A stretch of DNA of 64,000 nt, taken from Octopus sinensis (taxonomy: Eukaryota). The stretch covers positions 168,578,001 to 168,642,000 of the forward strand of contig NC_042997.1 of NCBI RefSeq assembly GCF_006345805.1. The letters run 5' to 3'. The notes under the pieces are model-generated. The model was not told the origin of the DNA. It did no database searches and saw only the letters and a program-made list of their open reading frames with translations. Within the stretch, counting starts at the first letter, position 1, and every line of letters begins with the position of its first letter. Shown one piece after another: positions 1,672 through 7,700 of the stretch. Made by a program: the position numbers and the translations under genes.

Positions 1672-1741
1672 TGGTATTTTATTGCAGTGGCAATAACCTT
1701 GAACACACTTGCCTTGATTTGAACAGATATCAGTTGTACCA
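1672..1741 (-). CDS. Coding exon 16: extra I-EGF module [23 protein letters not shown]
   Basis: TTTTGCTGCAG acceptor, GTAAGT donor, 70 nt, phase 2 to 0. CSxxGxCxxxxCxC pattern. Confidence 0.88.
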
Positions 1742-4700
1742 CTGCAGCAAAATATAAAAACAGATCCAGTAAAAGAGTAAAGATTGCACATTTATTCAAT
1801 ATCAATAATTTCATGAACCAGTTAATTGGTCTAAGACCATGCATAGAAAGAGGGACAATTACATTACAGAACAGTTGCATTTAAACCGGCCATATCCGGC
1901 CAAAAGTATTCTACCTGTTTTATGTTCAAACTGGCCAGATCTGGTCTCTCACACCAGCCCTACAATATCGTTTTAAAAATTAACAGCTACCTCATCAAAA
2001 TCTCATAGCTCCAAGATAATGCCTGATTAGTTCAAGGCAATGTGGATAAAAAAAGGATTAATTTTGGCAGAATAATGTGAACACTAAAGGGTTAAGAATA
2101 TTCAAAAACTGTTACATTGTCATTAGCTTGTTATGAAGAGCTAAAAAGTTCCATTATGCTTCTACACCAGTGTCACTGAAACAATTCCACTGCATCTGTT
2201 GAATATCAGTTAGTGGTATGTTTTTTCTTTTTATAGTCTTTGAATGCTTTCTTCTTTTTGTCCATTTAAAAAAAATTATTCTTTACCTTTCTTTTCTTAT
2301 TGTTGCATTCAAGTTTAAGCATGAACATATAATATACTAGCAGTATTGCCTGGCGTTGCTTGGGTTTGTTTTGACCCTTTAGAATTGGAATTTTTGAGGA
2401 GTAAAAATTTTGCATTATGTAGCTTGTTATTCTCTTTAAGTGAACATTTTTTATGGTTGAAATACACCGAAAAATGGCGACACAGCAGTCAAAAAATCGT
2501 AAAAAATAGGGATTTTCATAGAAAAAAAACACCTTTTTGATGTAAATAATTTTTGATAGTAACATGGTCTGATTTGAATTTTTTCTTCTACGGAATGAAG
2601 AGCAAGCCTTCTTCTATCATACTCTCCATTTTGGTCAACTTTCACTGCAGGATCTCGGAGGAGAAAGTGTTAGTTGAAGGCTACCAAACCTGCCATACAC
2701 AGACAACTTCAGCTTTATATAGAGAGAGATAATGTAATTATTTTATGTTTTAGTCAGATGTCCTTTTATGTGTGAATAAATCTTACCGTTAAGGGGTTTT
2801 CAAAGGATTCTTTGTTTTATATTAAGTTTGTTAATTGCTTTTACCACATTTGGATCTTTTTCAATCATCGAATGTTGTCAAACTACCTCTCCTCCTGTAT
2901 GAAGGGTATTCATGTAAACTCATCTGTCTCTGCTAAGTCAATATCTTCAATAATTTCAAACTCAAAACTCCTCTAAGCTCTTGAAATCTTCTAACACCAA
3001 CTCTTCTATTACCAAATCTGAAATATTTACTCTTCTGAATTATTTCTATAAATTAGCAAACTCATGAAACTATCTCCTTGACTAACGTATTATTCTTTGA
3101 ATGCCCTACATAGGCCTTTACTCTGCAATCTTTGCTACCATTGGCTCATTTGATTTCTGCATGATTATTCCTTTTATTCCACTTTATTGAATTCTTATAA
3201 GAAAAGATTCAATATAACTCATGTTTGTTTCTCTCTCCTATTTATCTCAGCTCTTGTATTTATGATATATTCATATAGACATATTCCTTTATTCTTTTAT
3301 TCTTTTACTTGCTTCAGTCATTTGACTGTGACTATGCTGGAGCACCACATTTAGTCGAAGAAATCCCCCCACCCCCACCAGGACTTATTCTATATAAGCT
3401 TAGTACTTATTTCATAATTTTTTTGCTGAACTGCTAAGTTATGGGGACATAAACACAGCAACATTGTTTGTCAAGCATGGCAGAAGGACAAACACACACA
3501 CATGCATAAACATATATATATATATATATATATTATATATATATATATATATATAATATATATATATATATAAATGACAAGCTTCTTTCAGTTTCCATCT
3601 ACCAAATTCACTCACAAGGCTTTGGTTGGCCCAAAGCTATAGTAGAAGACACATGCCCAAGGTGCCACACACTGGGACTGAACCCGGAACCATGTTGTCG
3701 GGAAGCAAGTTTCTTACCACACAGCCATGCCTGCACCTATATATATATATATATATATATATATATAGAGAGAGAGAGAGAGAGAGAGGGAGAGGGAGAG
3801 AGAGAGAGATAATATATAAACATATTTTATATATATAGATGCAGGAGTGGCTGTGTGATAAAGTATAGGAGTGGGTGTGTGGTAAGTAGCTTGTTTACCA
3901 ACCACATGGTTCTGGGTTCAGTCCCATTATGTGGCACCTTGGGCAAGTGTCTTTTACTATAGCCTCGGGTCGACCAAAGCCTTGTGAGTGGATTTGGTAG
4001 ATGGAAACTGAAAGAAGCCCATCGTATATATATGTATATATATGTGCGTGAATGTGTGAGTGTATGTATGTATTTGTCCCCCAACAATCGCTTGACAACC
4101 GATGCTGGTGTGCTTACGTCCCTGTAACTTAGCAGTTTGGCAAAAGAAACTGATAGAATAAGTACTAGGCTTACAAAGAATAAGTCCTGGGGTTGATTTG
4201 TTCGACTGAAGGTGGTGCTCCAGCATGGTGCAGTCAAATGACTGAAACAAGTAAAAGAAAGAATCTTTCTCACCTATACATATATATATATGTACATTTA
4301 TATATATATAAAACAATATCATTCTTTTGTCACTTACTTTGGCAACACTTGAAGCATCAGTACTATCTGTGTCTAACAAAATAACTAATTTTTAAAAGCA
4401 TTCCTTTTAAGCAGGGGATAAATAATATTTCTATTTAAATTAATAATATTTACACCTGATTCCCTTACCTTTTGATGCAATGGACAGTCAAATCTACAAC
4501 AAACTCCTGCAATGTAGAAAGTTGTATATTTTGTAATAAAGATCATTCTGGCAAGTGCTAAATAAGTGTCATCATCATCATCATCATTAGCTAACGACGT
4601 TGATGATGCTGATGATGATGATGATGGTGGTGGTGGTGTTCATGATCATTTCACTTAATATAGCAATACTAATAATTTGTTAGAGCTCAATGAAGTTGTG

Positions 4701-7700
4701 TGTGTGTGTGTGTGTGTGTTTGTGTGTGTGTGTTTGTGTGTGTGTGTTTGTGTGTTTGTGTATTGACAATACTACAGATAGTTTAGATAACTATATATGT
4801 TTAAATATTTTAGTGACCACAACGATGCACACCCTGAATAAATATTAAATGTGAGAAGTGAATAAGAAGCAAAAAGATAGATGTCAGCAAATTAAATAAT
4901 TGTAAACATATGTGTAAATATAATTGTGTGTTTGTGTAAGGTGCACATGGGTATAATCTACTAGAAATAGCATTAGAATCTCCTTCAAATTACAACCTAA
5001 ACGTTTCAATACCTCTTATGTATTTCTACTTTTGGCCAATATTTCTCCTTTCAATATTTCTTCATCAGTGTTACAATTATTGGTTTAAATCTTGACTCAA
5101 GGCCAAGAAGTTCAGAGGTGGAGGTAAGTTGATTACCAGTGCTTAAAAGAATGAAAAACAAAGTCAACCTTGTTGGCATGTGAATTCAGATGATAAAGAT
5201 GGATAAAATGTCGCTAAGCATTTCACCTGACTCGCTAACGATTCTGCCAGCTTGCTGCTTTTAATGTTACCATTATTAATAATGAGTCAAGGTGGTGAGC
5301 TGGCTGAATTGTCATCACACTGGATATAATGCTTAGTGGCATTTTGTCTATCATTACATTCTGATTTCAAATTCCACCAATGTCAGCTTTGCCTTTTGCC
5401 TTTCCAAGGTCAATAAAATAAGTACCTGTCAAGTACTGGGGTTGATGTATTCAACTTCCCCTCCTCTCAAAAACTGCTCGCTCCATGCCAAGATGTGAAA
5501 CCATTATTAATAATGGGTCAGCAAGGAAGTTTTCTAAATGGCTCTCAATCATAGACTGCTATCACCCACTATACTCACAGAGTGGTTGGCGTTAGGAAGG
5601 GCATCCAGCTGTAGAAACACTTCCAGATCAGACTGGAACCTGGTGCAGTCTCCTGGCTTCCCAGATCCCATCGAACCATCCAGCCTGTGCTAGCATGGAA
5701 AAAGGAAGTTTAACGATGATGATGATTCATATTTAAGATGCCATGAGGCATTTTATAATAAATAAACCTCAGTACTTCACTAGTAACTTATTTTGTAGAC
5801 CTTTGAAGGATGAAAGTCAGAGTTTATTATGACAAGATTTTGACCAAGAATATAAAAGGCCATAACCCAATTCAGTCAATATTTTGTCTGACATTTTACC
5901 AATTCTACCAATATGTTCAAGATAAACATTTCAAAATAAAAGATGATATTGGCCAAAGCTGGAACATTTTTGCTCATAAGTCAGCTTGATTAAATTTGAT
6001 CTGGGGCTAAACAATCATAAGGGCAGGATAAAATCCATTATCTTTTAATTTAGACTCAATAATCATTAATTCTTTTTATGTACAAACCTCTCTTCTTTCA
6101 CAGACTTTACCAGAAAATGGTGTTTCACATTGGCACTGATTTCCAATACACTTCCCACGATCACTGCACAATTGCTGCAAAATAATAATAATAATAATAA
6201 TAATAATAATAATAATAATAATAATAATGGCTTCTGATCTTAACTGATTGGAAGTGTTATCATGTACATTGTTTTGTCTTGGTATAAAAGATGGGCTACA
6301 GCAAATATTCTGCTCAATACCACAGATTTGCTTGTCAGTTGTTTGACCTTAACCAGTTGAGCATGTCCCTTAGTGGCTGACGATATGTGCATCTCTGATC
6401 ACGAGCAGAAGTAGTTGGGGAGCATCATAGCCATGTGTTGAGAGGGATTCTTTGGGGTTTGAATAATTCACCTTTGGAAACATGGGTGGTTCTTTCAACA
6501 TCCTTAAACAACCCTTATTCAGGGACCTTTTGAGCGGGATGGGCTACTCAACCTGAAGAAAATTCTAACTGGGCCCCACCTGCAAGGTCATGTGCTGTTT
6601 ATCTTGATATGAGATCACCATGTCGCGCACATATGGTTGTGATGCATGTGCCTGGTGTACCTTTATCAGACAGGTAGTCATGATGGGTATATTGGGCTTC
6701 GTATATTTTACCCCAGTGTCACTTTGATGGCATGCACTGCTCTCTCACTCAATAATAATAATAATAATAATAATAATAATAATAATAATAATAATAATAA
6801 TAATAATAATAATAAAGAAGAAGAAAAAAGGTAAACATTGGGTACAAGGAATTTATATAAGTAACCAACCCATGCTAGTATAGAAAATGGATGTTAAACG
6901 ATGATGATGATGACAGAAAATACTGTTGTCAAAGAAAATGATAATGATAATTTTTTTAAGAATTACAAAAATGATGCTGGTGGTGGTAATAATGATGATG
7001 ATACGGTGATGAGGATGACATTGATGATGATCATGATGATCATGATAATGTCATTGGTGCATGTGATGATGGTAAGGAATGTGATGCAATAAAATAAAAT
7101 ACATGTAAAATAATAATAAAAAAAGAAAAAGTCTTAATTGTATAGATGTTGGTGTTATATATATATCATTGTGATCTAAAGACAATAGATCCTGGAAATA
7201 AACTGAATAAGAACAGATACAGCCGGCAAAAATGGGTAATTCTTTGACAGACTGGCATCCTGTCCAGGTGATGAATATATACAGCATGAAACCAGAAAAC
7301 CAGCCCTTATGAATCGGCATGACTTGAGCAGGTAACTCTATCTTCTCCCACACAGGTTGTATTCACTATGTCTTACTGAGATTTGTTTCTATGTTGTTTG
7401 TTAAAAAGAAGCAAGTCACTTCTAGCTAGCAACAATGCAAATCTTACTTACTCCACTTGATGAGAGACAGTTCTTGGTGCGGACATCAATTTCACATGCT
7501 TCTCCAGTATACTGGTTTTTGCATGCACATTTGCCACATACACATTTACCATGGGTAGGACCTGAAAGAATAACACTAAAACAGTTGGTATTTTATTTTT
7601 AAAAAAAACATAAACAAAACATGAAAAAAAACATTAAAAAAACAAGCGTAGGAGTGGCTGTGTGGTAAGTAGTTTGCTTGCTTACCAACCACATGGTTCC

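Follow-up and report, generated by a model that had tools for sequence, protein, structure and literature searches.

ITGBL1/TIED of vertebrates is a secreted, stand-alone integrin stalk of ten integrin EGF repeats, in which the head, the transmembrane helix and the cytoplasmic tail are all missing (PMC7563769). Truncated beta1 paralogues have also been described in zebrafish, in which the transmembrane and cytoplasmic domains are lacking, the beta-I domain is kept with an altered ADMIDAS (adjacent to metal ion-dependent adhesion site) and the stalk is not expanded; as these domains are lacking, the proteins are presumably secreted (PMC1538996). Here, we describe a gene on the minus strand of a 64,000-nucleotide stretch of the Octopus sinensis genome (hereafter the window), which is an exact match to the encoding locus of assembly GCA_006345805.1 (CM016859.1, approximately positions 168,578,001-168,642,000). 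The gene likely encodes a secreted, headless integrin-beta-like protein of 976 amino acids (aa) with a stalk of 16 modules, in which the beta-tail has been kept and the membrane anchor has been lost.

Gene structure and annotation

The domain order of the protein was found to be signal peptide, PSI domain, hybrid domain without a beta-I domain, the integrin EGF-like module I-EGF1, five successive cassettes of I-EGF2, I-EGF3 and I-EGF4 (cassettes A to E), beta-tail and stop. This gives 1 + 5x3 = 16 I-EGF modules, which is twelve beyond the canonical four. Exons within the window were placed by exact string search on the minus strand, and all exon coordinates given below are window positions on that strand. 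Every one of these exons exactly matches XP_029637747.1 (976 aa), the top match of an exhaustive search of representative proteins (E=4e-276). Mapping of this protein onto the merged locus beyond the window identified a gene of 37 coding exons covering approximately 99.6 kb, with introns of the GT-AG type in all but one instance. The sixteenth exon is the last to lie in the window, with exon 17 situated approximately 2.6 kb past window position 1.

The protein is already predicted in public annotation, but is misnamed. The gene is present in three octopus genomes under three wrong or inconsistent names, being tenascin-X isoform X1/X2 in O. sinensis (XP_029637747.1 and XP_036362697.1, 976 aa), integrin beta pat-3 in O. 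vulgaris (CAI9716324.1, 976 aa) and, as a split pair, integrin beta-2-like (XP_014791255.1, 379 aa) and integrin beta-like protein 1 (XP_014791256.1, 604 aa) in O. bimaculoides. A Pfam scan of XP_029637747.1 returned EGF-type families only, including tenascin and teneurin EGF matches in the stalk, and the PSI domain and beta-tail emerged once fragments of the protein were scanned. The NCBI name tenascin-X was rejected, with neither fibronectin type III repeats nor a C-terminal fibrinogen globe found in the Pfam scan. A word-indexed protein search with the stalk gave one candidate and nothing significant, although the orthologue is present in that collection; the same search, which thus missed the orthologue, returned no transcript-derived open reading frame (ORF) entry for the peptide spanning the junction of exons 14 and 15.

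An N-terminus without a beta-I domain

Exon 1 (40995..41049) carries the start codon and the signal peptide and is an exact match to residues 1-18 of XP_029637747.1. The PSI domain is divided between exon 2 (38972..39054), which encodes its first half and is bounded by splice sites, and exon 3 (38401..38505), which encodes its second half together with the first strand of the hybrid domain. The hybrid domain continues through exon 4 (36536..36599), which aligns to hybrid residues of ITGB2, exon 5 (36276..36343), which is situated where the beta-I domain is inserted in canonical beta subunits, and exons 6 (34184..34251), 7 (33155..33209) and 8 (28745..28797), all three assigned by protein-to-locus mapping. 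Exon 9 (27047..27140) encodes the end of the hybrid domain and a CNCDC link to the PSI domain and I-EGF1, the cysteines of which are invariant in the alignment of headless relatives described below.

No exons for a beta-I domain or its metal ion-dependent adhesion site (MIDAS) were found in the whole window, either by tblastn with human beta3 (employed as a probe only) or by motif scans for the DxSxS of the MIDAS. The same tblastn comparison did match the PSI domain and the stalk. Residues 29-246 form one continuous alignment to PDB entry 2p26, an ITGB2 PSI/hybrid/I-EGF fragment engineered to lack the beta-I domain (E=1e-16). When aligned to full-length ITGB2, the N-terminus does so in two stretches that jump from approximately residue 89 to residue 302, skipping the beta-I domain. 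The two halves of the hybrid domain therefore follow one another without an intervening beta-I (VWA/MIDAS) domain.

This was supported by structure prediction. An AlphaFold2 model of the N-terminus, built from an alignment of nine headless relatives, was obtained with a mean predicted local distance difference test (pLDDT) value of 84.4 and a predicted template modelling score (pTM) of 0.78. Its best fold matches were 5e6w, 2p26 and 5e6v, with template modelling scores (TM-scores) of 0.76-0.81. Both the PSI and the hybrid domain are thus present, the former being recognised by Pfam PSI_integrin (E=1.5e-10) and the model fitting crystal structures of PSI/hybrid/I-EGF1 at a TM-score of approximately 0.8. 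As the engineered constructs 2p26, 5e6v and 5e6w are the best matches in both sequence and fold, a hybrid domain without its beta-I insert is structurally viable. The octopus gene is a natural counterpart of these laboratory beta-I-deleted constructs, in which the hybrid domain closes without the insert in a gene kept by selection.

The short peptide of exon 5 aligns to the C-terminal end of the alpha7 helix of the ITGB2 beta-I domain (LIKNAYNKL), and is not common to the other headless relatives in the alignment. As a possible alpha7 remnant, this peptide offers a hint, at the level of sequence similarity, that an internal deletion may have removed the beta-I domain from a once complete beta subunit.

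A stalk built from five-exon cassettes

Exon 10 (20257..20390) encodes I-EGF1 as well as the beginning of I-EGF2 (module A2), and ends in phase 2 after the residues CIK at 20257 (tgtataaaacc/gtaagt, the slash marking the splice site). The core of I-EGF2 is encoded by exon 11 (16533..16599), its end and the start of I-EGF3 by exon 12 (9596..9677; 82 nucleotides (nt)), the core of I-EGF3 and the start of I-EGF4 by exon 13 (7452..7561; 110 nt), and the remainder of I-EGF4 by exon 14 (6088..6174; 87 nt, phase 0 at both ends), which closes cassette A. Exons 10-14 were found to be colinear with I-EGF1-4 of ITGB2 (residues 437-591, E=8e-24, among PDB sequences), leaving module 5 unaligned. This fifth module begins in exon 15 (4469..4506), a mini-exon of 38 nt that opens cassette B and ends in phase 2 after CIK, and has its core in exon 16 (1672..1741; 70 nt, phase 2 to 0).

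The exons at 7561-7452, 6174-6088, 4506-4469 and 1741-1672 were confirmed to encode the peptides quoted in the initial annotation, with canonical splice sites and compatible phases. Each of these exons (13-16) is preceded by a pyrimidine tract and an AG acceptor and followed by a GT donor, and their joined frame is free of stops. Exon 11 is 67 nt long when its canonical donor is used, and in the annotated models it extends to 16530 (70 nt). The junction of exons 11 and 12 in all three annotated octopus proteins reads CECSPDV/MKTN, which needs the 70-nt exon ending gatgta/aatatt, a non-canonical AA-AG intron. A canonical GT donor lies 3 nt upstream, giving the 67-nt exon and no Val. Exons 16, 21 and 26, which are paralogues of exon 11, measure 70 nt and have their GT donors at the corresponding position.

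Module 5 was matched by Pfam EGF_integrin with 43 bits (cut-off 27) over profile positions 4-45 of 45, and the portion of it within the window with 30.8 bits; as these scores exceed the cut-off, it is not a chance match. Its loop lengths (11/8/5/14) closely follow those of A2 (10/8/5/14). The likeness between module 5 and I-EGF2 seen in the initial annotation was accordingly borne out, as were the shared phase-2 intron after CIK and the following exon of 70 versus 67 nt, with the reservation that the 67 nt refer to the canonical donor and that the annotated proteins use a 70-nt version for I-EGF2. Loop lengths across the stalk fall into types, namely 11/8/5/12-14 for B2-E2, 4/7/7/8 for 3-type modules and 6/6-7/5/8 for 4-type modules. 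In a neighbour-joining tree of the individual modules, which are short, those without C1 and C5 (the first and fifth cysteines) group together regardless of type. Modules were therefore typed by loop lengths and exon structure, as they are too short for a tree. By these measures, module 5 is the first module (B2, 2-type) of cassette B.

Downstream of module 5, the stalk extends beyond the window by eleven more modules, a possibility that had been raised at the outset. Exons 15-19 make up cassette B, exons 20-24 cassette C, exons 25-29 cassette D and exons 30-34 cassette E. The added cassettes each consist of five exons of 38/70/82/110/87 nt and amount to approximately 387 nt, beginning and ending in phase 0; in cassettes D and E, one or two of the exons deviate by 3 nt. 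The 38-nt exons 20, 25 and 30 downstream of the window are paralogues of exon 15. Cassettes A-E align nearly without gaps at 40-65% identity, with B and C the closest pair. As the five-exon cassettes are flanked by phase 0, the stalk grew by in-frame tandem duplication of the whole five-exon block. The exon-level duplication that had been proposed therefore stands, although its unit is a cassette of five exons and three modules present in five copies, and not a single module. The gene provides a clean case of domain-array growth through duplication of symmetric phase-0 multi-exon cassettes.

These same properties would permit another arrangement, in which the cassettes act as alternative blocks giving rise to isoform stalks of 4, 7, 10, 13 or 16 modules. 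As the length of each is divisible by three and both of its ends are in phase 0, any cassette could be skipped in frame, and the gene model of Sepia lacks some of the 87-nt exons. However, where these exons are missing in Sepia, cysteines remain without a partner, which has the appearance of an error in gene prediction. NCBI isoforms X1 and X2 of O. sinensis give one identical 976-aa protein, and no shorter octopus models were found, making alternative use of the cassettes unlikely.

Probable joining of exons 14 to 16 in a single gene

In O. bimaculoides the locus is annotated as two genes (the 379-aa and 604-aa models listed above). Read literally, this would mean that a gene for PSI, hybrid and I-EGF1-4 ends past exon 14, and that a separate, ITGBL1-type stalk-only gene starts from near exon 16. 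The interval of exons 14-16 of O. sinensis was aligned to the corresponding O. bimaculoides locus on CM046601.1 (locus L003, positions 4800-10242), and the position of exon 15 was found to fall within a run of 2,415 undetermined bases (L003 6262-8676). As this assembly gap covers exon 15, the split of the O. bimaculoides gene is an artefact. The models themselves bear its marks, with the 379-aa model terminating by readthrough of the exon 14 donor (…CERREVCT*) and the 604-aa model starting at an intronic ATG, having no signal peptide and opening in the middle of a module.

Further evidence against two genes comes from the exons. Exons 14, 15 and 16 fit one another in phase, a 38-nt mini-exon opens each of cassettes C, D and E just as it does cassette B, and exon lengths in O. 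bimaculoides are identical. A single 976-aa model exists in both O. sinensis and O. vulgaris, and each of these models connects exon 14 to exons 15-16, the connection upon which the initial interpretation had depended. The Sepia protein moreover has an equivalent peptide linking a 4-type to a 2-type module. Two separate genes are thus very unlikely, and a single gene running through all five cassettes is preferred.

Paired loss of the C1-C5 disulfide

The disulfides of an I-EGF module are C1-C5, C2-C4, C3-C6 and C7-C8, while those of a classical EGF are 1-3, 2-4 and 5-6. Cysteines were tabulated for all 15 repeat modules of cassettes A-E. Module A2 (I-EGF2) and all five 3-type modules have eight cysteines with C1 and C5 present, while B2-E2 and all five 4-type modules have six, C1 and C5 both being absent. 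The two cysteines are therefore absent together in nine of the 15 modules, present together in the other six and never found singly (0/15). In module 4, Ile (encoded by exon 13) stands in place of C1 and Gly (exon 14) in place of C5, and the corresponding residues of module 5 are Arg (exon 15) and Gln (exon 16). These are the substitutions from which a joint loss in modules 4 and 5 had first been recognised, and that observation was upheld. Judged by sequence, the six cysteines remaining in module 5 would fit the classical EGF 1-3, 2-4, 5-6 pattern. The tenascin and teneurin EGF matches of the stalk, and with them the NCBI name tenascin-X, are probably due to the loss of C1-C5 leaving this classical pattern.

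The pattern of C1 and C5 is kept in O. bimaculoides. Paired loss was also identified in the 4-type module of relatives from abalone, chiton and horseshoe crab (Haliotis, Liolophura and Tachypleus), and in the equivalents of A4 and B2 in Sepia pharaonis. As Sepia pharaonis shares the A4 and B2 losses, the cassette array and its cysteine pattern predate the genus Octopus. The array amounts to a natural experiment on the integrin-specific C1-C5 disulfide, with the pair gone in nine of 15 modules, never singly, and the other cysteines conserved.

Constraint on the cassette array

The ratio of non-synonymous to synonymous substitution rates (dN/dS) was determined for exon 16 and all exons after it, in a gap-free alignment of 583 codons between O. 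sinensis and O. bimaculoides with 90% amino acid identity. An overall dN/dS of 0.45 was obtained (dS 0.11). By region, values were 0.25 for cassette B, 0.31 for cassette C, 0.76 for cassette D, 0.59 for cassette E and 0.18 for the beta-tail, the per-cassette values being rough owing to small counts. All 88 of 88 cysteines are conserved between the two species and none has been gained. The initial annotation had taken the joint loss of C1 and C5 to be compensated and under selection, and this was upheld, the loss being paired and under constraint.

The values for cassettes D (0.76) and E (0.59) would suit an explanation in which the extra cassettes are decaying duplicate exons, partly pseudogenised and stitched together by gene predictors. 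Against this, the frame is intact over 37 exons in three species, the orthologues align without gaps, the O. bimaculoides exon lengths are identical (38/70/82/110/87) and no cysteine has been lost. The dN/dS of 0.18-0.31 for cassettes B and C and the tail is likewise at odds with decay, which is extremely unlikely. The cassette array is maintained coding sequence, not debris.

The beta-tail and the absence of an anchor

The beta-tail is encoded by the end of exon 34 and exons 35 and 36, with exon 37 encoding ECEA and the stop codon, so that the protein ends ...RRKECEA. Its C-terminal 95 residues were matched by Pfam Integrin_B_tail with 47.6 bits (cut-off 33.6). The beta-tail lies approximately 57 kb past the edge of the window, after the eleven modules that follow module 5. 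No hydrophobic 19-mer that could serve as a transmembrane segment was found in the whole 976-aa protein, and no transmembrane or NPxY coding potential was found in the 10 kb downstream of the gene.

These results bear on the first interpretation of the locus, which was that of a canonical beta subunit with a single extra I-EGF module in place of the beta-tail. Inside the window, I-EGF4 is indeed followed by an I-EGF module and not by a CxxC-led tail. Annotation of the adjacent sequence, which had been proposed as a check, recovered further EGF exons and the beta-tail, but neither a transmembrane helix nor an NPxY motif. The beta-tail has thus not been replaced by a fifth module, as it is present downstream of it and of eleven further modules. 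A canonical subunit is excluded by the lack of a beta-I domain, transmembrane helix and cytoplasmic tail, and by a stalk of 16 modules rather than four. The single-module interpretation is almost certainly incorrect. The evidence favours a secreted headless protein that has an extended stalk and retains its tail.

Some points weigh against this reading. The annotation of O. bimaculoides places two genes exactly at the exon 14/16 boundary, and the junction of exons 11 and 12 in the annotated proteins demands a non-canonical donor. Splice junctions are drawn from gene predictions (that of NCBI for O. sinensis and a separate annotation for O. vulgaris) together with sequence logic. Cassettes D and E, with a dN/dS of 0.6-0.8 on few substitutions, appear to be under weak constraint, and the rod, hinge pattern and extracellular role put forward below are inferred.

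Other features of the window

A number of repeats and mobile element remnants were identified within the window. In the intron between exons 7 and 8, a unit of approximately 830 bp is tandemly duplicated (29307-30913), its copies being 97-100% identical. Approximately 20 kb upstream of the start codon, a 100% identical direct repeat of at least 300 nt is found at 60752-61051 and 62930-63229 with a spacing of 2,178 bp, and the open segments 61156-60809 and 63334-62987 are identical to each other. A mariner-type transposase remnant broken by stops is situated at 59915-60630 on the minus strand (Pfam Transposase_1, partial DDE domain, E=4e-8).

Intron 9 contains an open frame of 300 aa (23478-24380, minus strand) with a zf-RVT match of 27.5 bits, right at the cut-off. 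It represents the C-terminal portion of a reverse-transcriptase ORF from a retrotransposon, and a related fragment is present at 31609-32400. An element resembling a short interspersed nuclear element (SINE), approximately 250-300 nt in length and reading ...ctttgtaagcctagtacttattctatc...gctaagttacggggacg..., occurs on both strands in several introns, with copies at, for example, approximately 7700-8000, 3900-4270, 9930-10260, 19800-20250 and 33640-33980. Several exons are flanked by long microsatellites, such as the (ATT)n directly upstream of exon 14.

Proposed properties of the protein

Loss of the C1-C5 disulfide would cause the affected modules to revert to the classical six-cysteine EGF pattern (C2-C4, C3-C6, C7-C8). 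The first residue of such a module, which directly follows C8 of the previous module, would then be freed from the core of its own module. In the 16-module rod, stiff 2-to-3 junctions may therefore alternate with looser 3-to-4 and 4-to-2 junctions. As there is no MIDAS, ligand binding of the kind performed by an integrin head is not expected, and pairing with the propeller of an alpha subunit is probably not possible. The protein most likely has an extracellular role, in the matrix or as an adaptor, in the form of a long rod rich in disulfides. As with vertebrate ITGBL1, integrins or other partners may be modulated through the surfaces of the stalk, the PSI and hybrid domains and the tail.

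A broader interpretation can be offered tentatively, although it is more doubtful than the structure of the gene itself. The protein may belong to an undescribed and widespread animal family of secreted headless beta proteins, distinct from ITGBL1, whose stalk in coleoids was brought to 16 modules by four cassette duplications with systematic removal of C1-C5. This would have produced a jointed rod and possibly a soluble partner or decoy for the legs of alpha subunits.

Comparison with known systems

Canonical beta subunits (ITGB2 and ITGB3; PDB 3k6s and 3fcs) share with the octopus protein the order of PSI, hybrid, I-EGF1-4 and beta-tail as well as the cysteine framework. They differ from it in possessing the beta-I domain with its MIDAS, the transmembrane helix and the NPxY tail, while the octopus protein has twelve extra modules and lacks C1-C5 in nine of 15. 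Structures 2p26, 5e6v and 5e6w are of laboratory constructs, whereas the octopus protein is encoded in nature and carries a long stalk and a tail.

Headless relatives, which bear a variety of automatically assigned names, are predicted in abalone, chiton, Solemya, horseshoe crab, a moth, teleosts and a nematode. These proteins, among them XP_046562643.1 of Haliotis rubra (537 aa, named 'integrin beta-like protein 1'), resemble the octopus protein in having a PSI domain, a hybrid domain without beta-I, I-EGF modules and a beta-tail, with no anchor. The headless relatives have 4-6 I-EGF modules compared to 16, and some of them may be partial models or splice isoforms. No paper describing cephalopod or mollusc ITGBL1-like proteins, stalk duplications or headless relatives was found in the literature on these subjects.

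An uncharacterised protein of Penaeus vannamei (XP_069973095.1, 971 aa) is also secreted, with seven Pfam EGF_integrin and three Integrin_B_tail matches. It differs from the octopus protein in that its repeat unit is a stalk plus tail, present three times, and in that it has no PSI or hybrid domain. Proteins repeating stalk plus beta-tail were seen in other invertebrates as well (this shrimp protein and a Logan transcript contig), and constitute a different route to multiplied integrin legs.

The interest of the octopus gene is structural and evolutionary, and it does not represent a breakthrough. Vertebrate ITGBL1/TIED is the closest known protein, and frog ITGBL1 was matched with E=4e-32 in the exhaustive protein search. 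Both proteins are secreted with a signal peptide and possess an integrin-type EGF array longer than four modules without a head or anchor. However, the frog sequence reads as pairs of 2-type and 3-type modules that keep C1-C5, with no 4-type modules, and it is without PSI, hybrid and beta-tail domains, all three of which are found in the octopus protein along with its 2-3-4 triplets. The stalk expansions of the two were probably independent, and by its architecture the octopus protein lies outside the ITGBL1/TIED family.

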